From the sequence record NC_061451.1: a stretch of 64,000 nt of DNA; one strand, given 5' to 3'. Below, one piece after another: positions 8,381-34,026 of this stretch (positions within the stretch are counted from its first letter, which is position 1; each line of letters begins with the position of its first letter). The notes below the pieces were generated by a model. The model was not told where the DNA came from, searched no databases, and saw only the letters and a program-made list of their open reading frames with translations. Position numbers and translations under genes: made by a program.

Positions 8381-8859
8381 TGGACAAAACAGAGAGCGCA
8401 AGCTCCAATAGCGAAAGGCACCGAATCTATTTCAGGCAGCCGCAACGAGTACCTCCCTTCGATACAGCTTTTGTTCGTGCGTCAGACACCACGAGCCTCA
8501 AGCTGCTTCTCTCGGCTGCTCCTGAACATTGTCAGATCATATTGTTTACGGACGGCACCGGCACTGCTTATGCCATGAAACGCCTCTTTAAGCGCAAATT
8601 CCTTTTGAACTCTCAAGCTCTACAACTCGATCTGCCTACGATAACACTTACAGGTCAGGTCGTTTATCAGTTCGTTCGCGGCGGCTCTGTGCGCGACAAA
8701 CTGAGTCGTTACTTCTGTGCTGGACCAAGCTATCTGCATGAGCTGGCACAAACGTCCGTTGAATCAGACGTTCTCGATATGTTCTGTTTGGGCTTAGACT
8801 TCCATGCGGTATTGCGTGCGAGGGAGCGTGGCCGTTCTATTGTCTTTACGGAGGAATAA
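8377..8859 (+). CDS. hypothetical protein
   Basis: 160 aa ORF coupled to exonuclease. Confidence 0.65.
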   Translation: MMDKTESASSNSERHRIYFRQPQRVPPFDTAFVRASDTTSLKLLLSAAPEHCQIILFTDGTGTAYAMKRLFKRKFLLNSQALQLDLPTITLTGQVVYQFVRGGSVRDKLSRYFCAGPSYLHELAQTSVESDVLDMFCLGLDFHAVLRARERGRSIVFTEE

Positions 8860-9887
8860 TGGGAAGAACGTTTGCGTCAGTGACTCGCCACTCACCTGTC
8901 GCTCAAATACCTAAGATGGAAATCAAATACGGTAAGAAGCCTATGCTTCACGTAGTTGATGCATCTAACTGGATGTGTCGTGCTTACTTTGCCACACGCG
9001 ATAAGCCTGTATATGCATCAGACGGTACACCCATCTACGGCCTGCGCCAGTTTCTGTACATGGTTCAGGACCTGATTGATATAGCAGCCAAAGACCCTAA
9101 CGGTTGCTACATTGCTTTCTGCTTCGACCCAAGCTCAAACGAAACGTGGCGGTATCGTGCTCTGCAAAACTGGGCAGCAACCAAGAAGAAGAAATTCATC
9201 AGAGGCGTGTTCAAGAAAAGCAGCGACTATAAAGGCAACCGAGACCGCTCTCAAACAGCCGAGCTTGGTGTGCAGATGATTTTAGCGCGGCAGATTCTTG
9301 AACTTGCAGGCTTCTATGTTGGCCTGAAAAAGCCATACGAGTGCGACGACCTTGTAGGAACTATCTGTCATAGATTCAAGCGCAAGTATCTGATCAAACT
9401 CTACTCACGCGATAAGGACTATGTACAGCTTGTTGATCACAAGAACGTTGAACTCATTATGCAGGCGCAGTCTAACGCAAAAGAACGCCGCTTCGATTTC
9501 AAAACAGCGAAAGGCTTCTTCGGTGTTCCTGCCGACCGTGTTATCGATATGCTCGCGCTGTGCGGTGATGGTGTCGATAACGTTCCAGGCATTCCTGGTA
9601 TTGGCGAGAAGACTGCTATTGAACATATTCATCGCCATGGTGGTGCTATTGAACTTCGTGACGCTCTGCTTAATGGCAAAGTGAAATCGAATGCAGGCTG
9701 GGCTAAAGCATTGCGCTCAGAGATTCCTTCGATGGACCTTGAACTCCAGATGGAGCTTGTCACTATCTGCCGCAACGTGCCGGGCATGCCTCGCACTATT
9801 GATGCGTTTGCTAATCGCACGCCTGATGTTAAAGCGCTCAAAGCAGTTAAGAAGCGTCTGGGCCTGACTAAACTATTACACGTATAG
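8859..9887 (+). CDS. 5'-3' exonuclease / flap endonuclease (PolI N-terminal, T4 RNase H-like)
   Basis: VVDASNWMCRAYFA, YKGNR, ECDDLVGT, SRDKDYVQL, GDGVDNVPGIPGIGEKTA. Confidence 0.92.
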   Translation: MGRTFASVTRHSPVAQIPKMEIKYGKKPMLHVVDASNWMCRAYFATRDKPVYASDGTPIYGLRQFLYMVQDLIDIAAKDPNGCYIAFCFDPSSNETWRYRALQNWAATKKKKFIRGVFKKSSDYKGNRDRSQTAELGVQMILARQILELAGFYVGLKKPYECDDLVGTICHRFKRKYLIKLYSRDKDYVQLVDHKNVELIMQAQSNAKERRFDFKTAKGFFGVPADRVIDMLALCGDGVDNVPGIPGIGEKTAIEHIHRHGGAIELRDALLNGKVKSNAGWAKALRSEIPSMDLELQMELVTICRNVPGMPRTIDAFANRTPDVKALKAVKKRLGLTKLLHV

Positions 9888-10440: not shown

Positions 10441-11027
10441 TGGATTTATCTTCTATCGGCTATGCAAACAAACCATTTCGCGTTATCCCTGTTACTTCTG
10501 GTAATATCGTAACTGATTTCATTGCCGGAAAGTTTCAGGTGATTGGCGTTGAGTGTAATGCTCGTGGTGCGTACGGCTCGCCGATTCAACAAAGCATTGC
10601 ACGCCGCTTCCCTGACGTGTTGCAGAAGATGAACGCGCTCGACTACGACCACCAGAACTTCATGGGCAGCACGTTGATGCATCCTGTGCAGACTCAGCAT
10701 CGTCGTCGTTTGTTTGTCGCTAACATGTTCCTTGCACGCGGCTTTGGGTTAGGCCAGAATCGCACTCAAAGTGAAGGTCCGATTAATCGTTTCAGTGAGC
10801 GACACTTGACGCAAGCCTTCGACAGTCTTGTTGATAGCTGTGCATCACTCAACATTAGTCTGGACCGCCAGATTGCTGTGCAGCGTTTCTACGGCGGTCT
10901 TGGTGGGGTATCTTGGGAAGAAGTATGTGAAGTGCTGGACGCTATTTGCGCCAAGCATAAATTCAACATGCTGGCTTATCTCCCTAAGAACTATAACTCT
11001 AACTTTGTGCGGGGTTCTGCGCAATAA
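10440..11027 (+). CDS. macrodomain-like protein (divergent)
   Basis: GNIVTDF, ECNARGAYGSPIQQSIARRFP, GGLGGVSWEEV match the macro pattern GDL..N..G.MG.GIA..FP / GCGLGGLDW. Confidence 0.65.
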   Translation: MDLSSIGYANKPFRVIPVTSGNIVTDFIAGKFQVIGVECNARGAYGSPIQQSIARRFPDVLQKMNALDYDHQNFMGSTLMHPVQTQHRRRLFVANMFLARGFGLGQNRTQSEGPINRFSERHLTQAFDSLVDSCASLNISLDRQIAVQRFYGGLGGVSWEEVCEVLDAICAKHKFNMLAYLPKNYNSNFVRGSAQ

Positions 11028-11042
11028 CTCTGGGGTGTATTG

Positions 11043-11375
11043 ATGAATACAATACGCGGTTTTGATTGGCTTTTTTATGAGGATGGCACCGACAGTGGCC
11101 AACACTCTGTTTTAAATATCGTCTGTGAACCACAGACTAAATCAATGCAGGTAGAAGTTCGAAAGGGATGCGCCGCACCTGTAATTCAAGCAATTCAGGA
11201 AAATGAAATCCTGTATGCTCAGACCGATGAAGGACTTTATCGAGTTCGTTATCGTTGTTCGTTTAAGCATCTTGCAGCGAACGCATTTCCTCCAGAGATG
11301 ACAGTGATCAAGTTGAAGTTGCTTGCACTCGACTTTCTTCCGGGCGTTACTACGCACGATAAACCTTTGGACTAA
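11043..11375 (+). CDS. hypothetical protein
   Basis: 110 aa ORF. Confidence 0.6.
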   Translation: MNTIRGFDWLFYEDGTDSGQHSVLNIVCEPQTKSMQVEVRKGCAAPVIQAIQENEILYAQTDEGLYRVRYRCSFKHLAANAFPPEMTVIKLKLLALDFLPGVTTHDKPLD

Positions 11376-11380
11376 CCGCC

Positions 11381-12103
11381 ATGATTACAGCGAAACACAT
11401 TGAAAGCCGTTTAAGAACAATAGACTATACCAAGCCTAATCCTGATCGGGAAATGCTTGTGGCGCTTGTGTCTGATGGACGTTCTCGTATTTTGAAGACA
11501 GCACAGATCGATGGTCTGTGTCCGCTGTCTGATAAGTATTTTGAGTTCTGCCTCAGCCAGGTCGGCTCTTTCTGCACGGCAGGTTACAACGCTGTGGAGA
11601 TTGCAATGTCTATCGGTGTTCAGCCTATCTATGTCGCAGCGCATATCCATCTGCATGGCTGCGATTGGGCACACAGACTTTTAGGCTTGAAGCGATTTGC
11701 TGCGCTTGCCCGTGGTCCACATACTGTGTGGTCATCAGGTGAAGCGTGGTTCGCTTTGGGTGAATGCCAGCGTCGCTCTAAGCTGCACTATGGCACTTCA
11801 AGCGGGCAGGAAGCACTGCGCAAAGCAATCCAAAAAGCAGAGATGCCTTATGTGCTTGCTGCCGCTGTCACACATCCCCATCGTCTCATGAGCATTCTCC
11901 GTCCGCGTGATGGTCTGTTGTATCGTGACCCACGTATCGAGAAGACGCTGAAACAACGTGAGAAAGCCGCTGCTGATGCAAAGGCGGAAGGCCGTTCTGT
12001 GCTAACGACTGAGAAGCGTAGCGAGTACGGCGACATGGGCAAGTTGTTTAACGGTCATCTGTCTCGTGCTGACAAGACAGGTAACCCTCGCGTAACTGAA
12101 TAA
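11381..12103 (+). CDS. hypothetical protein
   Basis: 240 aa ORF. Confidence 0.7.
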   Translation: MITAKHIESRLRTIDYTKPNPDREMLVALVSDGRSRILKTAQIDGLCPLSDKYFEFCLSQVGSFCTAGYNAVEIAMSIGVQPIYVAAHIHLHGCDWAHRLLGLKRFAALARGPHTVWSSGEAWFALGECQRRSKLHYGTSSGQEALRKAIQKAEMPYVLAAAVTHPHRLMSILRPRDGLLYRDPRIEKTLKQREKAAADAKAEGRSVLTTEKRSEYGDMGKLFNGHLSRADKTGNPRVTE

Positions 12104-12114
12104 GGAAACTTATC

Positions 12115-12495
12115 GTGGACAAGAATGAAATCACGCTGTTGATTGATAGCCTGAACGGAAATCGCAATTTCCCAATCGATCCGGAAGCTGCAATAGGCAT
12201 GACCCTTGAACAGTTCATCAAAACCAATGGGAACTTTGTGTTTCTCATGAATGATGCGCTCGTCCGTGACATGGTAAGCAAGCAGCATGAGTACGATCCA
12301 AACTTCGTACCGGCTACTACTCTCGACGAGATCAACAACGGTCTTATGGGAACTTTCCACGGTGTCAATGTGTACAGCACTTGGGTGTATCGTGCTCCTG
12401 GTGATCTGCCTGCGGACGCGAAGCCTCGTTTCGGTATGTATCGCGCCGACCTAAAACAAATCTTCCCGTTGACTAAACATTTTATCGTAAAGTAA
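12115..12495 (+). CDS. hypothetical protein, possible capsid-like fragment
   Basis: AAGGA RBS, GTG start; FVPATTLDEINNGLMGTFHGVNVYS. Confidence 0.6.
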   Translation: MDKNEITLLIDSLNGNRNFPIDPEAAIGMTLEQFIKTNGNFVFLMNDALVRDMVSKQHEYDPNFVPATTLDEINNGLMGTFHGVNVYSTWVYRAPGDLPADAKPRFGMYRADLKQIFPLTKHFIVK

Positions 12496-12546
12496 AACTG
12501 TTTACGGTAATTTCTGAAGGTCAATCAGAATAACGGAATCCTCATC

Positions 12547-13317
12547 ATGAGCAATATCGATACCACAATGCCTGAAGGCAAATGGGAGTTCAACGAGTCG
12601 GTTGCTTGCGTGTTTGATAACATGCTGCAAAACTCCATCCCATCTTATGGCCGTATGCGTGACCTGACGTACCGTCTGGGTCGTCGCTTCGTAACTCCCG
12701 GTTCAGCTATCGTTGATCTCGGTGCTTCACTCGGCCGAGCTATCGAGCCGTTTGCAAAAGAGTTCGGCAAGTATGACTATCATCATGCTGCGGACGCGCC
12801 GGGCGAAGACTACGAAACAGGCAATCACTATAGCCTGTATGAAGTAGCTCCTGCTATGCGCGAACGTCTGGTGCAGAATGAAGTGCTCAACTCAGTGAAT
12901 GCCAAACTGGAAAGTGAATCGCTGGTAGATACTGACACGTTTATGTTCGACGGTCAGGTGCATTGCTCGTTGATTCTGAGTGTGCTAACTCTCCAGTTCA
13001 CGCCGATTGAACATCGTCAACACATTCTGGAGAACGTGTACAACTCGCTGCAACCAGGCGGCGCATTCATCCTCGTTGAGAAGGTGTTAGGTGATAACAA
13101 CTATCTCGACAAAATGCTGGTGGACACCTACTACCAGATGAAGGGCGGTAACGGTTACAGCGCCGAGTCGATTGCGACTAAACGTAAGTCACTGGAAGGC
13201 GTACTCGTTCCTGTTAAAGCAGCATGGAACGAAGAACTGTTGCGTAAAGCAGGCTTCGGTCAGGTAGAAAGTTTCTATCGTGACCTGAACTTCGCAGGAT
13301 GGATTGCTATTAAGTAA
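12547..13317 (+). CDS. cmoA: CmoA-like carboxy-S-adenosylmethionine synthase
   Basis: WEFNESVACVFDNMLQNSIPSY, VDLGASLG, TLQF, PGGAFILVEK, NGYS...KRKSL (Arg199 equivalent at 13183-13185), AGF...F..LNF, collinear with E. coli CmoA as recalled. Confidence 0.9.
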   Translation: MSNIDTTMPEGKWEFNESVACVFDNMLQNSIPSYGRMRDLTYRLGRRFVTPGSAIVDLGASLGRAIEPFAKEFGKYDYHHAADAPGEDYETGNHYSLYEVAPAMRERLVQNEVLNSVNAKLESESLVDTDTFMFDGQVHCSLILSVLTLQFTPIEHRQHILENVYNSLQPGGAFILVEKVLGDNNYLDKMLVDTYYQMKGGNGYSAESIATKRKSLEGVLVPVKAAWNEELLRKAGFGQVESFYRDLNFAGWIAIK

Positions 13318-13326
13318 GGAAATACT

Positions 13327-14589
13327 ATGAAATTAAACGGGCGTATCTTAGCTATCGTCCCACACAAGACAATGCAAGACCGTACCAAGTCGGGTGTGGG
13401 TTCGTACATTGATGGGCTAGAGGCATACGGCTTCTGCGACTTTATCACAGACGGAGAGAACAGCTCCGTTACGAAAAGTCAGTGGTTCACTTATGGTGAC
13501 ACTACTCTCAGTGACGGTTATAAGATAGGGCATATCCAGAGCGAGTTGCTGATTGCACTTGAGCGCCTCCCATACCGTGCGATTATTTGCAGCACGTATG
13601 AGGCGATTGAAGCCTGTGTGTCTCTGGGACTGCCAAAGATTATGCCCGTTTACTATCGCACGCACAACAGCTTTTTGCTCACACAAGATCTCAAGGGTCT
13701 TGGTGCAGAGAAGATCCATCGTGCGTTGTTGCAAGCACGCGTCACAGGGCTGCGCATACTTGCTAACTGTGATTCGACTGCGATCAATCTTACTGAGCGC
13801 TATAAGACGCCAGCACACGTTGCCTACAACTCGTTCTCGGTGCCTGACTACAACCCACCAGCTCGGCGTTCTCCGCAACTGTTGATTATCTGTCGCTATG
13901 AGAAGGTCAAGCGCACGTTGTTTGCTGCGCGTATTGCTGCTGCATCAGGACTACCCGTTCGTGTTATGACAGGCAGTGATCGTCAAGCACGCAATTGGGA
14001 GAAAGAGCTGGCTGAGGCGGGCGTCAAAGAGTATACGGTCGTCAGTGGCCTTAGCGGCAAACAGAAACTCGAATTTATAGGCGCTTGCACCGTAGCCCTT
14101 TCTACTGCGAGCGTTGAATCATTTGCTAATGGTGTGCGTGAGTCTATCCCCTACTGTCCTACCTTTATCGTGCAAACATCCAAGTACGATTGGGCTAAGG
14201 ACTATACGCGCTTCTGTACCGCCGACAAGCATGTTCATATCAGAACTGTTGATCGCGTATCGGACCAAGCCGTAGCTGAAATCGGAAGTGAGATAGCGCA
14301 AACAGCTACCACTCGTTATCTGACAGGACCTCAGCGTAAGCAGCTACTGACTGCTTGGGCAAAGCAAGTTGATCGTGGTTGGTCCGACTTTGTTCAGAAG
14401 GCTGTTGTTGACGATGACGGCAAGCCGCTGCGCACCGAGCTGTATCAAGAACTGATCGACAAGTCAGAGATCGATTGGTCACAGACGCCCACGCTGATGC
14501 GTACTGTAAATGCGTTACATAAATGCCACGCTCGTTTGGGCCTGACATTTGATGGCACTAAAATCAAATATAAGAGGAAGCGCAAATGA
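13327..14589 (+). CDS. GT-B (GT4-like) glycosyltransferase
   Basis: SGVGSY N-terminal loop, CRYEKVKR, E-x7-E motif ESFANGVRE. Confidence 0.75.
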   Translation: MKLNGRILAIVPHKTMQDRTKSGVGSYIDGLEAYGFCDFITDGENSSVTKSQWFTYGDTTLSDGYKIGHIQSELLIALERLPYRAIICSTYEAIEACVSLGLPKIMPVYYRTHNSFLLTQDLKGLGAEKIHRALLQARVTGLRILANCDSTAINLTERYKTPAHVAYNSFSVPDYNPPARRSPQLLIICRYEKVKRTLFAARIAAASGLPVRVMTGSDRQARNWEKELAEAGVKEYTVVSGLSGKQKLEFIGACTVALSTASVESFANGVRESIPYCPTFIVQTSKYDWAKDYTRFCTADKHVHIRTVDRVSDQAVAEIGSEIAQTATTRYLTGPQRKQLLTAWAKQVDRGWSDFVQKAVVDDDGKPLRTELYQELIDKSEIDWSQTPTLMRTVNALHKCHARLGLTFDGTKIKYKRKRK

Positions 14590-15662
14590 GTGTTATCGGT
14601 GATATTTATAACATCCCACAACCGTTCGCAATGTATGTCGGGAATTGTGAGACGCGTGCTCAAGCCAAAGTTGCTGCTGGCACAATCGAGTGGGCGCCAG
14701 AGAAAGTGTGCTGCACCGTAGATGATGGTAACAACCTGTTCCCTAACGTACCTTCAATCAACCCTGCTGACGTGCATAAGACAGATGCAGAAACTTTAGT
14801 GATTGGCTGTGCACCTTTCGGCGGCCGCATTGACGAGCACATGGACAAAGCTATTCGTAGCGCTATCTATCGTGGCCGCAACATCGCTGCTGCTATGCAT
14901 ACGCGCCTGGCGGATAATCCTGAATACGTTGAGCTGGCTGATCGCTACAACGTCAAGCTGTATGACTTCCGCCATCGTCCTGATGCGTACCCACTCGGTA
15001 CTGGTGAGAAGCGTAGCGGTCTGCGTCTGTTAACTGTCGGTACTGATAGCTCATGCGGTAAGAAGTTTACCACGCTGTCTCTGTATCGTGAACTCAAAGC
15101 TATTCATGAAGCCACTACGTTCTGCTCTACTGGCCAGACGGGTTTCTTGATTAGCGGTTGCGGTATCAACAACGACACGATTGTTGCCGACTTCCTTGCT
15201 GGTGCCGCTGAATCACTTTCGCCTGATGGTCCTGCTGATCATGTTTATCTGATTGAGGGTCAAGGCGCTATCACGCACCCAGCATACACAGGCGGCAGTA
15301 TGAGTCTGATTGCTGGCTCGCAGCCTGATCATCTCATCCTGTGTCACGCATGGAACCGTCAGAATCAGTTGGGCGTTAAGCGTAAGCCTGACCTTGATTT
15401 CGAGATGCGTGCTAACATTGAAGCGGCACGTATTCACGGTCTCAACCCGACTTACATCGGTATCAGCATTAACTTCTCTGAGTGCGACCTCACCGCCGAT
15501 GAGCAAGATAAAATCCTGTACCAACTCGCATCAACGTATGAGATTCCCGTGTTCGACCCATCACAGGACACTTCTGTGTTGCGCGATCTCGCTCGTATGT
15601 TAGCAACTAAAGCCAAAGCAAGGAGCCTCGATGGCCAAGCATCAACTGCGCAAGCTGTTTGA
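14586..15662 (+). CDS. DUF1611 family protein (DgcN-like)
   Basis: LVIGCAPFGG, LLTVGTDSSCGKKFT, STGQTG, IEGQGAITHPAY, GSQPDHLILCH. Confidence 0.88.
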   Translation: MSVIGDIYNIPQPFAMYVGNCETRAQAKVAAGTIEWAPEKVCCTVDDGNNLFPNVPSINPADVHKTDAETLVIGCAPFGGRIDEHMDKAIRSAIYRGRNIAAAMHTRLADNPEYVELADRYNVKLYDFRHRPDAYPLGTGEKRSGLRLLTVGTDSSCGKKFTTLSLYRELKAIHEATTFCSTGQTGFLISGCGINNDTIVADFLAGAAESLSPDGPADHVYLIEGQGAITHPAYTGGSMSLIAGSQPDHLILCHAWNRQNQLGVKRKPDLDFEMRANIEAARIHGLNPTYIGISINFSECDLTADEQDKILYQLASTYEIPVFDPSQDTSVLRDLARMLATKAKARSLDGQASTAQAV

Positions 15663-16506
15663 ACAGCATGTGAAAAAAGAAGTGAAAGCAGACAAGGTAG
15701 CTGTGCTGCTTTCATCTGGCCTCGATGGTTTGGTCAGTGCGTTAGCTGCACACGACCTGGGCAAGAAGGTACATGCCTTCACATTCCAAATGGGTGACAA
15801 CCCTAGCTTTGACAGTCGCCACGCACAGGTCGTTGCACAGAAGATGGGATGGGAGTTCACTCTCGTTAAAGTTCCCACCAGCGTGTCTGCTATCGCGTTA
15901 GCGTGGCGCGTGCTACACTCCAAGTATCGCTGCATCAAGAAGCGTGACTATGAATGTGCGTACCCTATGGTCTATTGCTACAAGGCAATCAAAGACGCTG
16001 GGTATAAGTATGTGTTAAGCGGGCTGGTGGCCGATGGCTACTTCCTGTATAACCGTAACACGCACATTCAGAAAATCAGCGGCCCGCACTCTGACGCTCA
16101 GAAGTATCATGAGTTCCGTACTCAATACTTTAGTCCGTGGCTTAAACACGGTAAGAAGTCTCTGGGCGTTGACGGGTACAACCCGAGCGGTATGTTGCAG
16201 CATGAAATGTTGTGCGATAACTTCGGCCTGATTCACGTTAACCCGTGGATGCAGAACAAGGTGTTTGACTACTTCATCAAATACACTTGGCAGGAGCTGA
16301 ATCAGCCTAAGCAGAAGATGCCACTAACCGAAGCGTGGGCAGAACACATTGCTCTTGTTGGTCATCGCCCACACAGGGGCTATCAGACAGAAGCCAAAGT
16401 GCCTGAATACTTTGAGCATCTGATCGATAACCCTGAGATTAACTTTAACGGGCGCAAGCGCATCATGGACGTGGCACGCGACTGGTCCAAACGAGAGCCT
16501 GAATAA
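15631..16506 (+). CDS. AsnB-synthetase-domain ATP-dependent amide ligase lacking a glutaminase domain (CmoY-like)
   Basis: PP-loop LLSSGLDG, VLSGLVADGYF (AsnB VLSGEGADE), P..K..L; only 291 aa. Confidence 0.75.
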   Translation: MAKHQLRKLFEQHVKKEVKADKVAVLLSSGLDGLVSALAAHDLGKKVHAFTFQMGDNPSFDSRHAQVVAQKMGWEFTLVKVPTSVSAIALAWRVLHSKYRCIKKRDYECAYPMVYCYKAIKDAGYKYVLSGLVADGYFLYNRNTHIQKISGPHSDAQKYHEFRTQYFSPWLKHGKKSLGVDGYNPSGMLQHEMLCDNFGLIHVNPWMQNKVFDYFIKYTWQELNQPKQKMPLTEAWAEHIALVGHRPHRGYQTEAKVPEYFEHLIDNPEINFNGRKRIMDVARDWSKREPE

Positions 16507-16761
16507 ATGCATCCTGTTATCACAGACTTTCTTGGTCCTATCGTTAAGCGGCTGGGCTTATTCACTGCTATATTCGGTTTTGTCGGCGTGCTGCTGTCTG
16601 TGATCGCAGTGCTTGTGTGCCGCCCAGAAGTCCTTCAATACGAATACGATACTGTAAATAGACTTCGTACTGAGGGTATTGTATTCTTGGGTAAAGGCGT
16701 TCTTGTTTACATCGTAGGCGAGATACTTGAAGGCACGTTCAAGTGGAGAAAAGATGATTAA
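16507..16761 (+). CDS. small membrane protein
   Basis: Two hydrophobic segments. Confidence 0.6.
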   Translation: MHPVITDFLGPIVKRLGLFTAIFGFVGVLLSVIAVLVCRPEVLQYEYDTVNRLRTEGIVFLGKGVLVYIVGEILEGTFKWRKDD

Positions 16762-17017
16762 CAAATTCGTGATGAAGAAGACTCCATCCATTGAAGCCTG
16801 TCAGTGGAACGGAGAGAACAAGGAAGAGATTGAAGCCTTCCTTGGCAATAACGGATTCGTTGTTGGGCGTTACGTGCAGATTGGTGTTCTGGATAAATAT
16901 CAGAAGCCAACCATTGCTAACGTAAGCGTGGGCAACTATGTGATCAAGCGTGATGATGGTAAGTTCTATGCCATTACTGCGCAAGATCTGTTTGAGAATT
17001 ATGTATTAGCAGATTGA
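16754..17017 (+). CDS. conserved phage hypothetical protein
   Basis: IEACQWNGEN...VGNYVIKRDDGKFY...F...Y pattern typical of a common small phage family. Confidence 0.7.
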   Translation: MINKFVMKKTPSIEACQWNGENKEEIEAFLGNNGFVVGRYVQIGVLDKYQKPTIANVSVGNYVIKRDDGKFYAITAQDLFENYVLAD

Positions 17018-17024
17018 GGCCATA

Positions 17025-17477
17025 ATGAATCTGTTTTCTATTTTAAAACAGCAAGTGAAGAAATCCCTGACGACCGAAGCAACACTTGAACCAGAAGTGC
17101 GCAAACACTTTGACTGGCGTTTCAGTGTTGACGTCAAGGGCATGATGTACATTGTAGGCAAGACGGGCGCTAACACCTGCTTCTATCTTGAGCCAGGTCA
17201 CGTTGAGCCTACTGCCTGCTACCCTGATGAACTTCTTGCGAAGATCGATAGCTGGGGCGCTGCGAAGTATGTGTCCTACGCTGTCTATTTCAAGAAGTTC
17301 ACCAGTCCTGTAGCTGAAAACATCAAGACGCTTGAGCAAGCCAAGACAGGCAAGCCTAAAGCGTTTAAGAAAGGCTACTTTATCTGTGGCGTAACACCGA
17401 AAGGTAAGCGCGTCAAACTGTGTCGTCTACACAACAGCCTGAGCGGTATGCAGTGGGTTGATGTAGACCAGAAGTAA
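17025..17477 (+). CDS. hypothetical protein
   Basis: GAGG RBS, 150 aa. Confidence 0.7.
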   Translation: MNLFSILKQQVKKSLTTEATLEPEVRKHFDWRFSVDVKGMMYIVGKTGANTCFYLEPGHVEPTACYPDELLAKIDSWGAAKYVSYAVYFKKFTSPVAENIKTLEQAKTGKPKAFKKGYFICGVTPKGKRVKLCRLHNSLSGMQWVDVDQK

Positions 17478-17491
17478 AACAAGGAGCTTAT

Positions 17492-17812
17492 ATGATTAGC
17501 GACATTGACATTGGCCATTATTATAGTTCTGCGAGCGGTATACCGTTTCGCGTAAAAGAACGTGCAGCACACGGACAAGATTGTTCTCTGTCGATGATCG
17601 TATTTGAGAACGTGGAGGCAACTAAGGATTACCCTGTTGGTCAAACTTGGGTGCTTCCAGAATCTCTGTTCGTGAAACAGTATTCCGAATTTACGGAAGG
17701 AAAGTATCATGAACGAAACAACGCTCTTAGAGCATCTGAAAACAAGACACTGGCAACCAGAGAAGCATTTCGGGTGGCTTTCGCCGAAGACCCTGACAGT
17801 GCCACTGTATAG
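17492..17812 (+). CDS. DUF1653-like SH3-fold protein
   Basis: IGHYY...FRV...AAHGQDCSLSMIVF...WVLP..LF. Confidence 0.55.
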   Translation: MISDIDIGHYYSSASGIPFRVKERAAHGQDCSLSMIVFENVEATKDYPVGQTWVLPESLFVKQYSEFTEGKYHERNNALRASENKTLATREAFRVAFAEDPDSATV

Positions 17813-18225
17813 CTTTGACCGACAGATGAGAGGCGTTCAAGTCTATACGCCTAGCGCACCGAAGAAAGACCCGAACCCCAAAGCGTGTCGTTACTTCACT
17901 CGCGTGTTCGGTGGCAAACAGTTGGTGTGGGGAACGGAAATTAGACCTATACGGGCCGACCGTTTTCTTAACTGAGTCTGTGTTCAAAGCGTGTGCGCTA
18001 CATCGTCTCGGTCTCAATTCGTGGTCTGTTTTAGGCTCGAACGTGAGTGACTATTTATACCACCAGCTTAGTCTTCTTGACCTGCGTTTTGTTTGTCTAG
18101 GTGATGCGGATAAAGCTGGTGAGGAGTTCAGTCAGACGTTTGGTCGTGGTGCTGTTAGTGCCGACTTGGACGAGATGACTGATGAGCAGTTACTCGATTT
18201 AACTCTACCACTATTAAGGAAATAG
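17709..18225 (+). pseudogene. Toprim-domain primase-like gene split by a +1 frameshift near 17940
   Basis: Frame A ends QLVWGTE; frame B continues LDLYGPTVFLTESVFKA...GDADKAG (Toprim E and DxD) and has no good start of its own. Confidence 0.7.
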
Positions 18226-18226
18226 G

Positions 18227-18655
18227 ATGGAACATAAAGTTGTCGTGCGTATTCTCGGACCTGTTGGCAGCGGTAAGTCTTCTGTTTACGCCAAGCTCGT
18301 TAAAGGTCTGACTGATACTGGCGCTATCATCAAACACGCAGATGAGCAAGCGTGGAATATGCTGAATAACAGCGGTGAGGTAACTTCGGCCGACACGGTT
18401 CTCGATGAGTTTCGCACCGAAGTTACCTTCGAAGAAGTTGTGATTCGTGACGACTACACCAAGTCTAAGAATCAGATCATGCAGTTCTTCGCGTACTCGC
18501 ATCTGCCGCCTAACTTGCAAGCGATCAGTAAACCGATTGCGTTGCTCGCTCAGGAGATGGACCAGAATCTGCCTGATGGTGCTGAGAAAGCCGCTGGTCT
18601 GCGTAAGCTGCTTGAAGCGAAAGACTGTCTGGTTCGTGCGCTGGTAGCCAAGTAA
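18227..18655 (+). CDS. P-loop fragment fused to an Acb2/Tad1-like helical hairpin
   Basis: GPVGSGKS; C-terminal FFAYSHLPPNLQ..SKP...EKAAGLRKLLEAKDCLVRA. Confidence 0.6.
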   Translation: MEHKVVVRILGPVGSGKSSVYAKLVKGLTDTGAIIKHADEQAWNMLNNSGEVTSADTVLDEFRTEVTFEEVVIRDDYTKSKNQIMQFFAYSHLPPNLQAISKPIALLAQEMDQNLPDGAEKAAGLRKLLEAKDCLVRALVAK

Positions 18656-19133: not shown

Positions 19134-19535
19134 ATGAGACCTGAAAACATTTCACGCACCTATCGCGTCGGTCAGTCTGACCTGGAGAAAGCACACAACG
19201 TCTGCGGAGAGAACAATGTAACACTCTCAGATGTGGTACGCAGATACATCGAAAGAATCGTACTGACTGAGGGTGAGTTCCTTATGAGCGAGCGTAAGCA
19301 CGTACCTGAGTCTCAACTGAATGTACGCCTGCCCTTTTACATTGCGCACTCCTTTGCATCTGTGTGTAAGTCTCGTGGTACGTTAGCCTCTAAAACCATT
19401 CTCAACTTTGTCAGGAATATTGCTCTTTCAGGTACTATCCCTGAGGAGTTAAAGTACGCCTCAGACACAGAGTTGCGTGCCTATATTACCTCCGAGCGCT
19501 CTCGCCTCGATGCACTGGAAGCAAAACTTAAATGA
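19134..19535 (+). CDS. tandem ribbon-helix-helix DNA-binding protein
   Basis: RTYRV...TLSDVVRRYIE and QLNVRLP...ASKTILNFVR. Confidence 0.6.
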   Translation: MRPENISRTYRVGQSDLEKAHNVCGENNVTLSDVVRRYIERIVLTEGEFLMSERKHVPESQLNVRLPFYIAHSFASVCKSRGTLASKTILNFVRNIALSGTIPEELKYASDTELRAYITSERSRLDALEAKLK

Positions 19536-20371
19536 TTCTAACTAGCCCCATTCGCTATCAGGGCAACAAGCGCACTCTGATGCCTCTTATTCTTGAACAT
19601 GCGCCTGTGAAGGATTGCGTTCGCATGATAGACGCATTCGGCGGTAGCGGTACTGTTGCGCTCAACATGCCTCACAAGTTTCGCATCTACAATGAATTGA
19701 GCACGCCTGTGTTTGAGATCGTCCAGTTGCTTGCGCATCAAGATCCGAAGAAAACGTTGGGTCAGATCAAGCGTATCGTCAAGCGTTTTTGTCTAACCAA
19801 TAGCAGCCAAGACAACTACGACATGTTCCGCGCGTATGTGCAGAAGAAGCCTAGCCCTCTTCACCATTACATCGCACACAGGCATGCACGCTCTAACATG
19901 CTGCGCTTCAACCAGAAAGGCATCTACAACGTGCCGTTCGGCGAGCGGGGCCTGATTGGCAAGTTCGATCAGCTCGAACAGGAGCTGGTGCAGTTCCACG
20001 AGCGTATGCAGAACACGCACATCACCAACATGCGCTACAACATGTTGCTCAAGTCTGTGTCAAAGCATATCGGACCTAACACGTTCATTTACTTTGACCC
20101 TCCGTATCTTGCTAGCGGTGCGATGCAATACGGTAAGTGGACTGAGCACAACGAACGCAACCTGCTGTCCGTACTTGAGTATCTGAATCGTCAAGGCTGC
20201 CCGTGGATGTTGAGCAACGTTCTCCAACATCGGCATCACACGAACGACCTGCTCAAACGCTGGCTAAAGAAACACGCAACGACTGTCATCTATCCTGACA
20301 AGTCTTATTCAATGGCCAACTCTCATTCCGATAGTCACAGCACTATCGAGATCCTGGCAATGAACTACTGA
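19532..20371 (+). CDS. dam: DNA adenine methyltransferase (Dam/D12 class)
   Basis: SPIRYQGNK, DAFGGSG, YFDPPY, WMLSN. Confidence 0.92.
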   Translation: MILTSPIRYQGNKRTLMPLILEHAPVKDCVRMIDAFGGSGTVALNMPHKFRIYNELSTPVFEIVQLLAHQDPKKTLGQIKRIVKRFCLTNSSQDNYDMFRAYVQKKPSPLHHYIAHRHARSNMLRFNQKGIYNVPFGERGLIGKFDQLEQELVQFHERMQNTHITNMRYNMLLKSVSKHIGPNTFIYFDPPYLASGAMQYGKWTEHNERNLLSVLEYLNRQGCPWMLSNVLQHRHHTNDLLKRWLKKHATTVIYPDKSYSMANSHSDSHSTIEILAMNY

Positions 20372-23284: not shown

Positions 23285-23669
23285 TCAGTTACGTGATCAA
23301 TTGACCGAAGCTGAATACGCAGAACTTGAGCGCACTACAGCGCGGTCGATCATGGAACAAGTGTGGGCACTACGCGGCTGGACGGTAAAGCTCGACTGGT
23401 GCAACTATATGTGCGACGACGTTGATTGGTTATTCCATGGTAATGAGCGTAAAGCACCAGTTGATCACGCTATGCCGAATTCTGGTGTTGGCACTAGCAT
23501 TGAGCAGCATCGCCTTAATGTCGTGTTTACTCCTACTGAGGTTAGCGTTACGAACTCACTGGTAGACAGCCCTGTCACGGGCACTGGTATGTCACTGCGC
23601 TGTGCTTACTGCGCGTGGCTTTTAGAAATCGAAAAACAAAAGGCTGCCAATGCGCTGCAATCTGACTGA
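23271..23669 (+). CDS. hypothetical protein (NinX/DUF2591-like?)
   Basis: P....GTSIEQHRLNV...G.SLR.A pattern. Confidence 0.55.
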   Translation: MSSVNQLRDQLTEAEYAELERTTARSIMEQVWALRGWTVKLDWCNYMCDDVDWLFHGNERKAPVDHAMPNSGVGTSIEQHRLNVVFTPTEVSVTNSLVDSPVTGTGMSLRCAYCAWLLEIEKQKAANALQSD

Positions 23670-24165
23670 ACTGCCTATCAAACTCGATCAGGCTGAAAAC
23701 ATTATGGGCAGCGTGTTCGCGCTTGCTGCTGGCTCCAAGTCCAAACGCCGTGCTACTGCGGCAATGCTCATTCACTTCCATGAAGGCTACCCTACCATTA
23801 TCAGTAGTGGCGTCAATGGTACTGTGCCCGGTGAGAGCAACGTGTGTGAGAATGAAGACCTCACTCTGACGTTTGCGCACGTCACCCACGCAGAAGCTAA
23901 CTGCCTCAATCGCATGGACGAATACAGTCTGTGGCCAGAAGAAGAGGACATCCTGTTTTGTACTGACAGCCCATGTCCTGATTGTTTGCAGCAACTCGAA
24001 TCTGCTGGTGTGCAGACCATCATTTATGCGCGTGAATACAGACTCACAGAGCACCTGGATAAGTCTGCTATTCGCATGTATTGTCTCGATATTGAGAACG
24101 TGCGGGCGTCTTTGCTGAAATCTGTAAATCGTATAGACGAAGTGATTGCAACCATACCTACTTAA
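23650..24165 (+). CDS. dCMP deaminase
   Basis: SGVNG.PG, HAEAN, SPCPDC Zn motifs. Confidence 0.9.
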   Translation: MRCNLTELPIKLDQAENIMGSVFALAAGSKSKRRATAAMLIHFHEGYPTIISSGVNGTVPGESNVCENEDLTLTFAHVTHAEANCLNRMDEYSLWPEEEDILFCTDSPCPDCLQQLESAGVQTIIYAREYRLTEHLDKSAIRMYCLDIENVRASLLKSVNRIDEVIATIPT

Positions 24166-28090: not shown

Positions 28091-29191
28091 ATGACAGGTC
28101 CTCTCGATCTCACTAACCCACAGCACTTCGAACTGTACTCGCTGCACAGCGTTGATGCACAGTATATCAATCTGTGTGACGCACTCCTCACTCAGGGTAC
28201 GCACGAATCTGACCCAGAGCGCACTACTGATACGTGGCATACGCTGATCGGTATTGGCTTCCAGTTGTCTAACACCAACATCGCTTTCCCTGCGCTGCTG
28301 TCTAAGCGTGTCAACGTCCGTGCAGCTATCGATGAATCATGCTGGTTCGCACGCGGTGAAACGAACATCGCAACTCTCGGTTCTAAAATCTGGAACGAGT
28401 GGGCAGACGAAGAAGGTGAGAACGGTCCTATCTACGGCTTCCAGTATCGCAACTGGCCTGACATTAAAGTGTTCAATACTGTCGAAGGTATGATTGAGCA
28501 GCACATCCCACCAGCAATGATTGAGCGCATCTCGAAAGAGATCAACCGCATGAAGGCGCAGGGCTATATCGAAACTGCGTTGCCTGATGGTCGCGTGCTG
28601 TATGAAGGCTATATCGATCAGTACGCTGATGCACTACGTCAAATCATGGCGCGTAGTCGTAGCCGCCGCATTCGTGTGCAAGCGTTCAACCCTGGTTACG
28701 TTGGTATGCAGAGCCTGCCTCCGTGTCACACTGAGTTTGAGTTCAACGTGACCAAAGCTACTGCGTATGAAATTGCGCAGATGGAAGCACGCTCAATGCG
28801 TCCTGACGCCGACTCACTGCATATCGTGGTGACGATGCGCAGCAATGATGCACTTCTCGGGCGCCCCTTCAACATCGTTGGCTACAGCGCCATGCACCAG
28901 TTGTTTGCGAAGTGGGCGGGTCTGAACGTTGGTTCGTTTACTCTGAATGTGACCAATATGCACATGTACGATCACCACCGCGAAGCGTATGCACAACAGC
29001 GTGAGCAGTGGCTGGAACTACAGACGCAGATGCAGACGACAGGCAAACCTGTTGTTTACCCTACCCTCGAAATCACTGACGACATTCTGGGCCTGACGCC
29101 AGAAGAGCTGCTGGATAACGTCAACGTCGATTGGTTCGAGCTGGTGGACTACTCTCCTAAACCTGCTGTTAAAGGACGCGTAACCAAATGA
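28091..29191 (+). CDS. thyA: thymidylate synthase
   Basis: IWNEWAD, GPIYGFQYRNW, SRR, LPPCH, RSND..LG.PFN, HMY. Confidence 0.93.
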   Translation: MTGPLDLTNPQHFELYSLHSVDAQYINLCDALLTQGTHESDPERTTDTWHTLIGIGFQLSNTNIAFPALLSKRVNVRAAIDESCWFARGETNIATLGSKIWNEWADEEGENGPIYGFQYRNWPDIKVFNTVEGMIEQHIPPAMIERISKEINRMKAQGYIETALPDGRVLYEGYIDQYADALRQIMARSRSRRIRVQAFNPGYVGMQSLPPCHTEFEFNVTKATAYEIAQMEARSMRPDADSLHIVVTMRSNDALLGRPFNIVGYSAMHQLFAKWAGLNVGSFTLNVTNMHMYDHHREAYAQQREQWLELQTQMQTTGKPVVYPTLEITDDILGLTPEELLDNVNVDWFELVDYSPKPAVKGRVTK

Positions 29192-31190: not shown

Positions 31191-31889
31191 ATGGCAAAAA
31201 TTGCTAAAGCAAAGGAAGGGAAAAAGAAAAGCAACCCTATGTTGATTGACCTGAAAAAGTTCAAGTCAGTTAAACAGCTTAAGGGTGCGAAGTACAACCC
31301 TCGTTTCATTACAGACAGCCGACTGAGAGCGCTCGAAGGTTCTTTGGGCAGCTTCGGTGATTTGTCTGGCGTGGTGTTCAACAACAGCGTAGACAGTGGC
31401 GTATTGATCTCAGGCCACCAGCGTCTCAAGTCGATTGAGAAGTGGGACTCGCGCATTGAGATTCAACAAACGTCTGACAAGTACGGCACGGTAGCGTTGG
31501 GTTATATCCATGCTACCAGCGCCAAAGGTAAAACGATCAGCATCCCACTGCGTATCGTTAACTGGTCAGATAAGAAAGTGGAGTTTGCTGCTAACATTGC
31601 TGCGAATGCCCACGGCGGTGAGTTCGATAACAAAAAGCTCGCGTCTCTTGTTGAGAAGCTGGACCTGACTACAATCAAGCCAGCTCTTATCGGGCTTGAC
31701 CCGTTAGAGATTCGCGGCCTGCAACAGACGCTGAGCAAACAAGCTATCGTCGAGCAGGAAAAGCGTGTTGGTAAAACAACAGGCAAAATGAACGGCAGTA
31801 CTGGCGAGTTCAAAGAGTACACGACTGATGAAGTTGGTACTGCGCTGACCTGCACCTGCCCACGTTGTGGCTTTAAGTTCGAGGGATAA
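31191..31889 (+). CDS. ParB/Srx-like domain protein with C-terminal Zn ribbon
   Basis: KYNPR, SFGDLSGVVFN, LISGHQRLK; CTCPRCGFKF. Confidence 0.8.
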   Translation: MAKIAKAKEGKKKSNPMLIDLKKFKSVKQLKGAKYNPRFITDSRLRALEGSLGSFGDLSGVVFNNSVDSGVLISGHQRLKSIEKWDSRIEIQQTSDKYGTVALGYIHATSAKGKTISIPLRIVNWSDKKVEFAANIAANAHGGEFDNKKLASLVEKLDLTTIKPALIGLDPLEIRGLQQTLSKQAIVEQEKRVGKTTGKMNGSTGEFKEYTTDEVGTALTCTCPRCGFKFEG

Positions 31890-31890
31890 C

Positions 31891-34026
31891 ATGATCATCA
31901 AGCCGCCTACAATGAAAGAGATTAATAAGCTGCCCAAGCCTTGGTCAGGTATGAGTTTCTTTGCAGGTTGCGGTGGTTCATCTACCGGTCACAAGATGGC
32001 CGGTATTAACATCCTACTGAGCAACGAGTTCGTGGACGCGGCTCGTGAATCGTATGAAGCGAACCATCCAACAACCAAAGTGTTGCCCCACGATATTCGT
32101 CGTCTTGACCCGAAAAAGCTGCTTAGCTATTGCGGCCTGAGTCAGGGCGAACTGGACTTGCTCGACGGCAGTCCTCCGTGCTTCACCGAAGACACGTTCA
32201 TTCATACCGACACTGGTATGAAGTTCATCACTGATATGCGCATCGGTGACTTCGCTATGACCTCTGTTGGTAAGTATCATCCAGTGTATGACACGATGGT
32301 ACGTCCGTATGACGGTCAGATGCACAGAATTGAAACGCTGCTTGGTCAGAACAATGCAACGCCTGAACATCCGTTCTTTGTTCGTCGTCAGAATGAAGAA
32401 ACTGGCGGGTACAGTGAGCCGTTCTGGTGTGACGCTAAAGATGTGCAGGAAGGTGACCTGTTAGGTACGCCTCGTGTTACGCCTGATATGGGCGAAGCAC
32501 ACACGCATGAGATTATCTCGTCGTTGACTGCGCAGCTTGTGCGTTGGATTGCATTGCCTGAGTTCTGGTGGCTGATTGGTCACTGGTGCAATCGCGGTGC
32601 AATCGATAAGATTCGTGGTGTCGATGTTATTCAATTCACCTCGATGACAGCGATGGAAAACTCGCTGGTGGAACAAGCGTTCGACGTGCTCAAGTTAAGC
32701 AGCATCAACAGCGCTTCGTCCGACATGGGCGTTCATCGTAAGACCGTTCGTGTTGTTATGGACACAGACCTGTTGCTGTTCTTGCGTATGTTTATCGCGC
32801 AGGGCAAGAAGTCTATGTCCCGCCGTCTGCCTGGCATGATCTTCCATCTGGCTAAAGAGCTGAAACAGCAATTCATTCTCGGCTATCTGGGTCGTGATTA
32901 CGTCACAGCAATGGGCGTTGGTCATGCGTTAGAGGCTGACTCAAAGCGCTTCCTAGTTGAGATGAATTACCTGTGCTGCTCTGCGTTCAACAGACCGCTG
33001 TTCGATGCAATGTTGTTCACTGACTTGCATTACGGTAGTCCGATGTTACCACCGAGTCGCTTCATTACCAAAGAGCACATCGGCTTCCTGTTCTTGCAAG
33101 AAGAGGTTAATTTCTTCTTTGAGTTCGAGCCGGAAGACCCGCATCTGTGGGTTGAAGTGATTGAGAACTTTACGCATCATGAAACGTGCAACGTCTATAA
33201 CTTCTCAGTCAGTGTTGATGAGACGTATGTTGCTAACGGCATGGTCGTGCATAACTGCAAAGGGTTCTCGACTGCTGGCGTGAAAGAAGACGGCTGGGGC
33301 AAAGAGGTTAAGTACAGCGGCAACAAGTATCAGCAAGTCGATGACCTGTTCGATCAGTATTGCCGTATGCTCAAGCACATGCAGCCTAAAACGTTCACTG
33401 CGGAAAACGTTAGTGGCCTCGTTAAAGGTGCGTCGAAGGGTTACTTCATTGAAATCATGAAGACCTTTGATCAGCTGGGCTACTATGTGCGAGCGCCGTT
33501 GCTTAATGCTGCGTGGCTTGGTGTGCCTCAGTCTCGTGAGCGTATCATCTTTATGGGTGTGCGCAAAGACGTGGCGAAAGCACTCGGCTATAAAACTGCG
33601 TTGACTGCTGTGCCTGATGTAACACCTCAATCAAGCATGGCGTTCCTTGCAGATGCATTGCCGAACATTCGTCGCTATAAAGGTACGGAGCGTGACATTA
33701 TCAAGTATCTGCCTGCTGTTAACGGCCCGATGCCTACGATTACCGCTGCTGATGCTATCGCATACGAAACAGCACGCTTCTCCTCTGCTGGCTTCATTGA
33801 AGACGACAAAGGGCACAGACGCAAGCTGACGATTGACGAACTCAAAGTTGTGTCAGGCATGCCTAGTGATTACGTGCTCACAGGTAAGTTTGAAGAACAA
33901 TGGGAACGTCTCGGTCGTGTGTGCGTACCTGCAATGACGTGTGCTGCGGCAAGCGCGTTGATACGCCATGTGCTTGAGCCTTACGCGAAGCTGCGTAAAA
34001 AGAAACCTGGGGATCGTTTTCGTTAA
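31891..34026 (+). CDS. DNA cytosine-C5 transferase (Dcm fold), predicted carboxymethyltransferase (CmoX-like), intein-containing
   Basis: Motif I FFAGCGG, IV GSPP|CKGFS, VI ENVSGL, VIII PQSRERI; motif X reads LGRVCVP instead of GN(S/A)V. Confidence 0.88.
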   Translation: MIIKPPTMKEINKLPKPWSGMSFFAGCGGSSTGHKMAGINILLSNEFVDAARESYEANHPTTKVLPHDIRRLDPKKLLSYCGLSQGELDLLDGSPPCFTEDTFIHTDTGMKFITDMRIGDFAMTSVGKYHPVYDTMVRPYDGQMHRIETLLGQNNATPEHPFFVRRQNEETGGYSEPFWCDAKDVQEGDLLGTPRVTPDMGEAHTHEIISSLTAQLVRWIALPEFWWLIGHWCNRGAIDKIRGVDVIQFTSMTAMENSLVEQAFDVLKLSSINSASSDMGVHRKTVRVVMDTDLLLFLRMFIAQGKKSMSRRLPGMIFHLAKELKQQFILGYLGRDYVTAMGVGHALEADSKRFLVEMNYLCCSAFNRPLFDAMLFTDLHYGSPMLPPSRFITKEHIGFLFLQEEVNFFFEFEPEDPHLWVEVIENFTHHETCNVYNFSVSVDETYVANGMVVHNCKGFSTAGVKEDGWGKEVKYSGNKYQQVDDLFDQYCRMLKHMQPKTFTAENVSGLVKGASKGYFIEIMKTFDQLGYYVRAPLLNAAWLGVPQSRERIIFMGVRKDVAKALGYKTALTAVPDVTPQSSMAFLADALPNIRRYKGTERDIIKYLPAVNGPMPTITAADAIAYETARFSSAGFIEDDKGHRRKLTIDELKVVSGMPSDYVLTGKFEEQWERLGRVCVPAMTCAAASALIRHVLEPYAKLRKKKPGDRFR
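32179..33255 (+). mobile_element. intein (359 aa) with degenerate LAGLIDADG endonuclease
   Basis: Starts CFTEDT, block B ATPEHPF, ends YVANGMVVHN; +1 residue is the catalytic Cys. Confidence 0.92.

Follow-up and report, generated by a model that had tools for sequence, protein, structure and literature searches.

In the genome of the Erwinia amylovora jumbo phage pEa_SNUABM_7 (NC_061451.1, Snuvirus, 265.6 kb) we identified a gene, gp019, whose product is a DUF1611-family protein and very probably acts as a dedicated accessory of the ligase branch of the 5-carboxymethylcytosine (5cxmC) DNA-modification pathway. The gene lies within the window that we analysed (bases 1–64000 of the record), of which a queried stretch, 12500–16600, matched NC_061451.1 at 100 % with unchanged coordinates. 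The pathway is known from Synechococcus phage S-B43, whose CmoA, CmoX and CmoY (here SpCmoA, SpCmoX and SpCmoY) constitute a 5cxmC-glycine system (Yang et al., Nat Commun 2025, PMC12783734). gp019 is a member of a cluster of this kind, the adjacency of DUF1611 gene to ligase gene is fixed, and the protein falls into a separate phage clade whilst keeping the family's active-site residues intact. As to the fuller statement, that this phage offshoot of the DUF1611/DgcN proteins assists the ligase by N-acylating a D-amino-acid-type building block before ligation, we judge the chances of its being right or wrong to be evenly balanced. The gene itself is as follows (pI, isoelectric point).

14586–15662, + strand: gp019, DUF1611/DgcN-like putative acyl-CoA N-acyltransferase, pI 5.5 (PF17396 and PF07755; 7xrj; phage-only clade)

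The product of gp019 is 358 aa long and is annotated in the record as 'hypothetical protein'. Its ATG (14586) is preceded by a Shine-Dalgarno-like AAGAGGAA and has an ATGA in common with the stop of gp018 (13327–14589), whilst the ATG of gp020, at 15631 with AAGGAG ahead of it, lies upstream of the gp019 stop (15660–15662) in a 32 nt overlap. A promoter and terminator scan of positions 11000–18500 returned sites no more numerous than in shuffles and was uninformative on operon limits. The initial annotation of this DNA, made from the sequence alone, had described complete DUF1611 motifs as well as overlaps of gp019 with both neighbours, an ATGA with a glycosyltransferase (GT) gene and 32 nt with an amide ligase gene; both overlaps are present, and both Pfam domains were matched almost end to end. 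For DUF1611_N (PF17396) the match (E-value 5.5e-18, 65.5 bits against a cut-off of 22.6) covered profile positions 9–95 of 95, and for the DUF1611 P-loop domain (PF07755; 2.2e-46, 158.3 bits against a cut-off of 25) it covered positions 3–195 of 201. The nearest solved structure by sequence was 7xrj (E-value 4.3e-53), and an AlphaFold2 model of gp019 (mean predicted local distance difference test score, pLDDT, 94.4) has the fold of the solved DUF1611 members 7xrj, 2obn and 2g0t, with Foldseek E-values of 5e-30 to 3e-20 and template modelling (TM) scores of 0.75–0.84. For 7xrj, listed as 'N-acetyltransferase DgcN-25328', the TM scores were 0.78/0.83 with 34 % identity in the alignment; weaker Foldseek matches were to BioD-type P-loop enzymes and other nucleotide-binding proteins.

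In place of published DgcN active-site residues we used family-wide invariants, defined as positions whose conservation reaches 93 % or more in the phage group and in the bacterial group alike. All 49 of these are kept in gp019, including the P-loop G152-T-D...G158-K159, TGQTG, EGQG, H105, H231, C253, K28 and four Arg, and because of this the chemistry of the protein, acyl-CoA-dependent N-acylation of a D-amino-acid-like amine, is probably retained by analogy with its family. Only seven positions set the phage and bacterial clades apart (phage/bacterial: S181/A, F187/I, T198/A, I199/V, A228/S, G237/V and S240/G), of which position 237 separates the two groups as G or V at 99–100 %. A C-terminal helix at about aa 330–357 is found only in the phage proteins. 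We rejected the idea that the phage clade had gained a basic DNA-binding surface or insertions, as it contains no core insertion and its median pI (5.8, vs 6.2 for the bacterial proteins) is not higher. The simplest reading of these alignments is that the chemistry would be unchanged and the acceptor pocket modestly altered. With the NCBIfam DgcN equivalog NF041892, gp019 scored 289.8 bits (2.2e-86), below the cut-off of 480, and its phage relatives scored 327.7 and 355.4, compared with 560.4 for a Vibrio protein (L022). Thus gp019 departs from DgcN in equivalog score, in lacking a DgcA neighbourhood and in not grouping with bacterial DgcN in the tree; by these measures it belongs to the DUF1611 family and is not a DgcN orthologue.

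In a tree of 170 DUF1611 proteins (FastTree, midpoint-rooted) all proteins from a phage context fell into one clade (72 rows; Shimodaira–Hasegawa-like support, SH, 100; stem 0.62), which held none of the 79 proteins from bacterial genomes. As this clade is nested inside bacterial diversity, its position suggests that phages acquired DUF1611 by a single capture.

At the phage and viral-type loci examined, the association with the ligase was without exception. A DUF1611 homologue occurred in 34 of 50,697 phage records, all of Erwinia or Dickeya jumbo phages, and the matching ligase was found in each of the 34. Additional loci were reached in metagenomes through database proteins down to 37 % identity; the contigs that bear the pair look viral, being 34–222 kb long and carrying primase, polymerase, RecA-type and baseplate genes. 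Using profile hidden Markov models throughout, we found the ligase gene directly 3′ of DUF1611, or with only an alanine-racemase-like (Alr-like) gene between them, at 21 of 21 loci of a first survey; three of three further metagenome contigs were arranged likewise and also carried CmoX and CmoA within the cluster. In most lineages the DUF1611 stop overlaps the start of the next gene. The gene orders on individual loci include the following (3-deoxy-D-arabino-heptulosonate 7-phosphate synthase is given as DAHP synthase; PALP denotes a pyridoxal phosphate (PLP) enzyme described below).

L005: DUF1611, ligase
L006/L007: DUF1611, Alr-like, ligase
L008/L009: CmoA, 84 aa, GT, DUF1611, Alr-like, ligase, DAHP synthase
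L021: CmoX, DUF1611, ligase, CmoA
L102: CmoX, DUF1611, ligase, CmoA, 147 aa, PALP
L103: 436 aa, DUF1611, ligase
L104: CmoX, CmoA, DUF1611, ligase
L188: CmoX, 78 aa, chorismate mutase, CmoA, DUF1611, ligase
L189, L190: CmoX, DUF1611, ligase, CmoA-like

At L021, L102, L104 and L188–L190, the genes for CmoX, CmoA, DUF1611 and the ligase all lie within about 4 kb. For comparison we used 160 ligase-less loci, of which bacterial genomes and metagenome contigs supplied 80 each; the metagenomic ones were the best 80 by similarity to the query, are all of DgcA type and served as extra controls. Ligase, CmoA and CmoX were absent from all 160, and a DgcA-like MR_MLE gene was present in 112 of the 136 that had enough downstream sequence. 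No DgcA-like gene was found at any of the 24 phage or viral-type loci (21 of the first survey and three later). The Vibrio gene order (Na:Ala symporter, alanine racemase, DUF1611, MR_MLE, class IV aminotransferase) confirms that true DgcN belongs to a setting of D-amino-acid catabolism. The initial annotation had remarked that DgcA is missing from the window, and indeed there is no DgcA-like open reading frame (ORF) of the enolase superfamily (MR_MLE type) within the 64 kb, nor such a gene in any Erwinia or Dickeya phage record.

Further evidence comes from otherwise syntenic Erwinia jumbo phages, in which the cassette between the conserved CmoA gene and conserved downstream genes varies in content, as listed below (2OG, 2-oxoglutarate).

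SNUABM_2, SNUABM_5, phB78: ligase only
Y3: ligase and 2OG-Fe(II) oxygenase (L185 4478–5116), no DUF1611
AD1, Alexandra: DUF1611 and ligase
pEa_SNUABM_7: GT, DUF1611 and ligase
SNUABM_1: GT, DUF1611, racemase-like and ligase

Judged by gene content, such swapping is the pattern expected for a diversifying DNA-modification arm, and the 2OG-Fe(II) oxygenase of Y3 suggests that the 5cxmC arm is tailored in a further way there. A tree of 15 ligase sequences (IQ-TREE) placed the DUF1611-paired ligases in two deep lineages, one sister to SpCmoY and the other with the unpaired Y3 ligase, a split that roughly mirrors the DUF1611 tree; gp020-type ligases form the sister group to SpCmoY.

The genes of the window that are relevant to the pathway, other than gp019, are these.

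12547–13317, + strand: gp017, CmoA-like carboxy-S-adenosylmethionine (carboxy-SAM) synthase (TIGR00740, PHROG 4752, SpCmoA)
13327–14589, + strand: gp018, GT-B/GT4-like glycosyltransferase, basic, pI 9.25 (remote homologues, EX7E, model)
15631–16506, + strand: gp020, CmoY-like AMP-forming amide ligase with a PP-loop and no glutaminase domain, basic, pI 9.3 (Asn_synthase, SpCmoY)
31191–31889, + strand: ParB-like protein beside the cytosine transferase (PHROG 620)
31867–34026, + strand: CmoX candidate, cytosine C5 carboxymethyltransferase, with an intein at about nt 32179–33255 (PF00145, SPPC, Arg)

The gp017 product matched the NCBIfam CmoA model TIGR00740 (1.2e-39, under the equivalog cut-off), PHROG 4752 (3e-78) and SpCmoA (28 % identity, 1.2e-21). 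For gp018 there was no domain match in Pfam or NCBIfam; remote homologues found by exhaustive search bear Glycos_transf_1 and Glyco_transf_4, an EX7E motif runs from E264 to E272 in the alignment, and the model (pLDDT 88.6) resembles the retaining GT4 enzymes SenB, TarM, SdgB, MshA and BshA. The 291 aa product of gp020 matched Pfam Asn_synthase (1.8e-13) and SpCmoY (33 % identity, 4.8e-47). Sequence searches of the PDB with gp018 and gp020 returned nothing significant, and neither gp018 nor gp019 nor the Alr-like protein had a family in PHROGs. The ORF at 31191–31889 matched the PHROG 620 'ParB-like partition protein' (2.3e-31), its AD1 homologue is annotated as ParB-like, and ParBc genes are known to accompany CmoX (PMC12783734).

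By the criteria of Yang et al. (PMC12783734), a CmoX is a C5-methyltransferase homologue with SPPC and an Arg at the position of SpCmoX R350, a residue that binds the carboxymethyl group. The 719 aa candidate in our window matched PF00145 (6.3e-38) in two stretches and also carries Intein_splicing (1.3e-7) and Hint_2. Its N-terminal piece ends in SPPC (aa 102–105), and a second Cys, C464, follows ...HN; as the SpCmoX alignment resumes at C464 after the SPPC piece, we place the intein at the catalytic cysteine (SPP-C...HN|C). In local alignments of the two extein pieces R684 stands opposite R350. A 491 aa ORF of the related cluster L021 (11064–12539) also bears an intein. As such, pEa_SNUABM_7 is predicted to encode the full published 5cxmC toolkit together with two extra enzymes. 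The DNA-modification setting, the upstream GT and the downstream amide ligase, all of them proposed in the initial annotation, are each upheld by these matches: the setting by CmoA, the CmoY-like ligase, the GT, the ParB-like gene and a CmoX candidate that has both SPPC and the Arg corresponding to R350, the GT by the agreement of remote homologues, EX7E motif and model match to retaining GT4 enzymes, and the ligase by its Asn_synthase PP-loop domain and identity to SpCmoY.

Another gene, gp029 (19532–20371), was considered as the cytosine transferase and rejected, being a Dam-type N6-adenine methyltransferase (PF02086, 7.3e-26); it is preceded by a small ORF (19134–19535) with weak RelB/DinJ-antitoxin-like matches. 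Beside CmoA in related phage clusters there are shikimate-pathway genes, DAHP synthase (L008:10943–11806, 2.4e-42) and chorismate mutase CM_2 (L188:4622–5089), which could boost prephenate, the co-substrate of CmoA. Elsewhere in the window lie a dCMP deaminase gene (23650–24165), a thymidylate-synthase homologue (28091–29191) that is long (366 aa) and aligns in separate pieces, perhaps owing to an insertion, and an ORF (8859–9887) that is annotated as hypothetical, yet bears both 5′–3′ exonuclease (flap endonuclease, FEN-type) domains (5.7e-24 and 1.5e-15).

Hints as to the substrate come from the PLP enzymes that accompany the pair. In several phages an alanine-racemase-family gene (314–327 aa) sits exactly between DUF1611 and the ligase (L003:6032–6976, L006:9055–10038 and L008:9103–10068). 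These Alr-like proteins keep the PLP Lys (VVKGN.YG.G) and the GYG Tyr, which we take to be the second catalytic base, and their nearest structural relatives are alanine and serine racemases. On a 181 kb metagenomic contig, L102:10058–11035 encodes a PLP enzyme of the D-cysteine desulfhydrase/1-aminocyclopropane-1-carboxylate (ACC) deaminase family (TIGR01275, 1.1e-25). By their family membership, both kinds of enzyme point to free amino acids and D-amino-acid chemistry, in keeping with the family of gp019. We also compared protein charge across ten clusters: CmoX (pI 8.7–9.6), the paired ligases (8.4–9.6) and the GT (8.9–9.25) are basic, whilst CmoA (5.1–5.7), DUF1611 (5.4–6.2), the Alr-like proteins (5.5–6.1) and PALP (5.5) are acidic. 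As a heuristic, charge sets DUF1611 among the small-molecule enzymes and the GT among the DNA-acting ones. With DUF1611 acidic and most ligases, CmoX and the GT basic, charge mildly favours gp019 making the amine donor of the ligase over gp019 acting on DNA.

Taken together, these phages probably carry an N-acylated, possibly D-, amino-acid arm on their DNA, and the following sequence of events would produce it. CmoA would form carboxy-SAM, from which CmoX would generate 5cxmC on phage DNA. Using acyl-CoA, probably acetyl-CoA, gp019 would N-acylate, at its alpha-amine, a D-configured building block of amino-acid type that bears a further amine; this block would be drawn from the host pool or, in sister phages, may be supplied by the phage-encoded Alr-like or D-cysteine-desulfhydrase-family PLP enzyme. 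The ligase would then adenylate 5cxmC and couple the remaining free amine, and the basic GT4-like enzyme would act last, glycosylating the DNA-borne product. With an acyl cap in place, ligation would be confined to one defined amine, and a diamine would be kept from bridging two activated cytosines. For the arm itself we infer, and purely so, N-acetyl-meso-diaminopimelate as a candidate, since no other universal host metabolite would combine a D-centre with a second amine; the nucleoside so predicted would have an [M+H]+ of about 500.2, vs 286.1 for 5-carboxymethyldeoxycytidine (5cxmdC). A D-amino-acid-derived, N-acylated arm on phage cytosine, built by a D-amino-acid source, a DUF1611 cap and a CmoY-like ligase and in some phages glycosylated, is possible, and we put it forward tentatively.

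The order of acylation and ligation could also be the reverse, with the ligase attaching a diamino acid or diamine to 5cxmC and gp019 then N-acylating the free amine of the arm on DNA. Of the two options in the initial annotation this was the first, the other being that gp019 supplies the ligase with its amine substrate. Other phage hypermodification pathways as a rule tailor their bases step by step on the DNA, which counts in favour of this order; the catalytic residues are kept, the C-terminal helix is phage-only, and the V-to-G change at 237 and other changes near H231 (EGQG...HP) could open the pocket for a tethered substrate. However, gp019 and its phage relatives are acidic (pI 5.4–6.2), with the bacterial small-molecule DgcN-type enzymes no less basic, and they have no core insertion, whereas the proteins of the same clusters that are expected to contact DNA are basic. 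Moreover, the co-occurring PLP enzymes need a free alpha-amine and must therefore act on free amino acids. Acylation of the free molecule before ligation appears somewhat more likely than acylation on DNA afterwards; the latter follows not far behind and, taken by itself, we regard it as unlikely.

A more intimate partnership is conceivable, in which the ligase would only activate 5cxmC, as an acyl-adenylate or CoA thioester, and gp019 would pass this substituted acetyl group on to a D-amino acid at its amine; the resulting cytosin-5-yl-acetyl-D-amino acid would be a formal analogue of N-acetyl-D-glutamate. This would account for the use of simple D-amino acids (from the racemase, or host D-Ala or D-Glu) with no need of a second amine. 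In line with it, DUF1611 holds a fixed place directly upstream of the ligase, its stop codon overlapping the start codon that follows, where asparagine synthetase has its glutaminase domain; the two lineages diverge roughly in parallel, and C253, H105 and H231 are invariant across the family. Yet SpCmoY, the sister group of the window-type ligases, completes ligation alone, the phage clade is acidic, and the residues that do not vary among the bacterial enzymes, which use acetyl-CoA, are all kept, with no remodelling for a DNA-borne acyl donor; we hold such a role to be improbable. Finally, gp019 might be an unrelated auxiliary metabolic gene, an ordinary DgcN that acetylates free D-glutamate, for instance to upset the pools of peptidoglycan precursors in the host or to exploit D-amino acids, and that adjoins the modification genes by chance. 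Its best matches are indeed to DgcN (NCBIfam, 2.2e-86; 7xrj) and all family invariants are conserved. Against this, its score of 289.8 bits lies below the 480-bit cut-off and the 560.4 bits of the Vibrio protein, neither the window nor any of these phages has DgcA, the phage clade excludes every protein from bacterial genomes, and DUF1611 moves with the ligase in a swappable cassette of otherwise syntenic genomes. Adjacency to the ligase at 24 of 24 loci, in very divergent phages, cannot be chance, and the probability that gp019 is such a bystander is very low.

Several points weigh against our preferred reading, the N-acylation by gp019 of a building block ahead of ligation. The function of DgcN itself is said to rest on one study. 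Supply of a capped amine would require a so far conjectural diamino substrate, because a simple amino acid such as D-Ala, D-Glu or D-Ser, once N-acylated, offers the ligase no further amine. The GT needs an acceptor, usually a hydroxyl, and the proposed arm offers none obviously. Charge is a heuristic only, as SpCmoY acts on DNA yet has a pI of 5.8, and the DUF1611 tree comes from FastTree alone, with midpoint rooting. In the ligase tree, members lacking DUF1611 stand interspersed with the paired ones, and SpCmoY ligates glycine without a partner (PMC12783734). For these last two reasons DUF1611 would be unneeded for ligation as such; from the trees it is best described as an ancient yet dispensable companion of the ligase that stands outside the ligation chemistry.

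The 5cxmC pathway was described in December 2025, with glycine as the one arm identified, and according to the authors of that work other ligase clusters must use unknown amines (PMC12783734). The text of the paper makes no mention of DUF1611, acetyltransferase or glycosyltransferase, and in the portions of its supplements available to us there is no DUF1611, PF07755, racemase or Erwinia, nor any list of the residues that form the glycine pocket of SpCmoY. We found nothing further on 5cxmC in the literature, and the only mention found there of a phage DUF1611 was in a table, where Dickeya phage AD1 is credited with a 'DUF1611-domain containing protein'. As far as the accessible parts of the CmoX paper extend, the claim of the initial annotation that this role is undescribed for the family stands: the context is new for DUF1611, and the function probably so.

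These findings present gp019-type DUF1611 as a fourth recurrent enzyme of the 5cxmC pathway and a previously undescribed partner of its ligase, one that accompanies the ligase both in the jumbo phages of Erwinia and Dickeya and on large phage contigs from marine and other metagenomes, and that is tied to D-amino-acid enzymes. For a poorly studied family this would be a second, unrelated biological role, and a D-amino-acid arm, if true, would be a new DUF1611 function and, to our knowledge, would give the first D-amino-acid-containing DNA base. The natural cassette variants in near-identical phages offer a cheap and concrete route to new DNA hypermodifications, and the pair might be of use for attaching protected amines to DNA in vitro. 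As phages of this kind are used against fire blight, their DNA chemistry also bears on an understanding of restriction escape.

When set against known systems, gp019 resembles each in part. DgcN, which Yu et al. are said to have described in 2023 as the D-glutamate N-acetyltransferase of the DgcN-DgcA pathway, shares with gp019 the two-domain DUF1611 fold and all 49 family-wide invariants. Unlike DgcN, gp019 belongs to a phage-only clade, is never found beside DgcA and always beside a CmoY-like ligase, falls under the equivalog cut-off, and has seven clade-specific substitutions (G237 for V amongst them) and a C-terminal helix. Thymidine hypermodification in phages is likewise stepwise, with amino-acid transfer followed by PLP-dependent tailoring, and has in common with the present system a handle on a pyrimidine, an amino-acid-derived arm and accessory tailoring enzymes in a variable cassette; its handle is a hydroxymethyl or pyrophosphoryl on uracil, whereas that of 5cxmC is a carboxyl on cytosine, and we know of no DUF1611-family enzyme in thymidine hypermodification pathways. 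With S-B43, pEa_SNUABM_7 shares homologues of CmoA, CmoX (with SPPC and Arg) and CmoY as well as a ParB-like neighbour. Unlike S-B43, which has no DUF1611, GT or racemase gene, pEa_SNUABM_7 has its ligase preceded by a GT and a DUF1611 gene, and its CmoX is intein-bearing and encoded 15 kb away.

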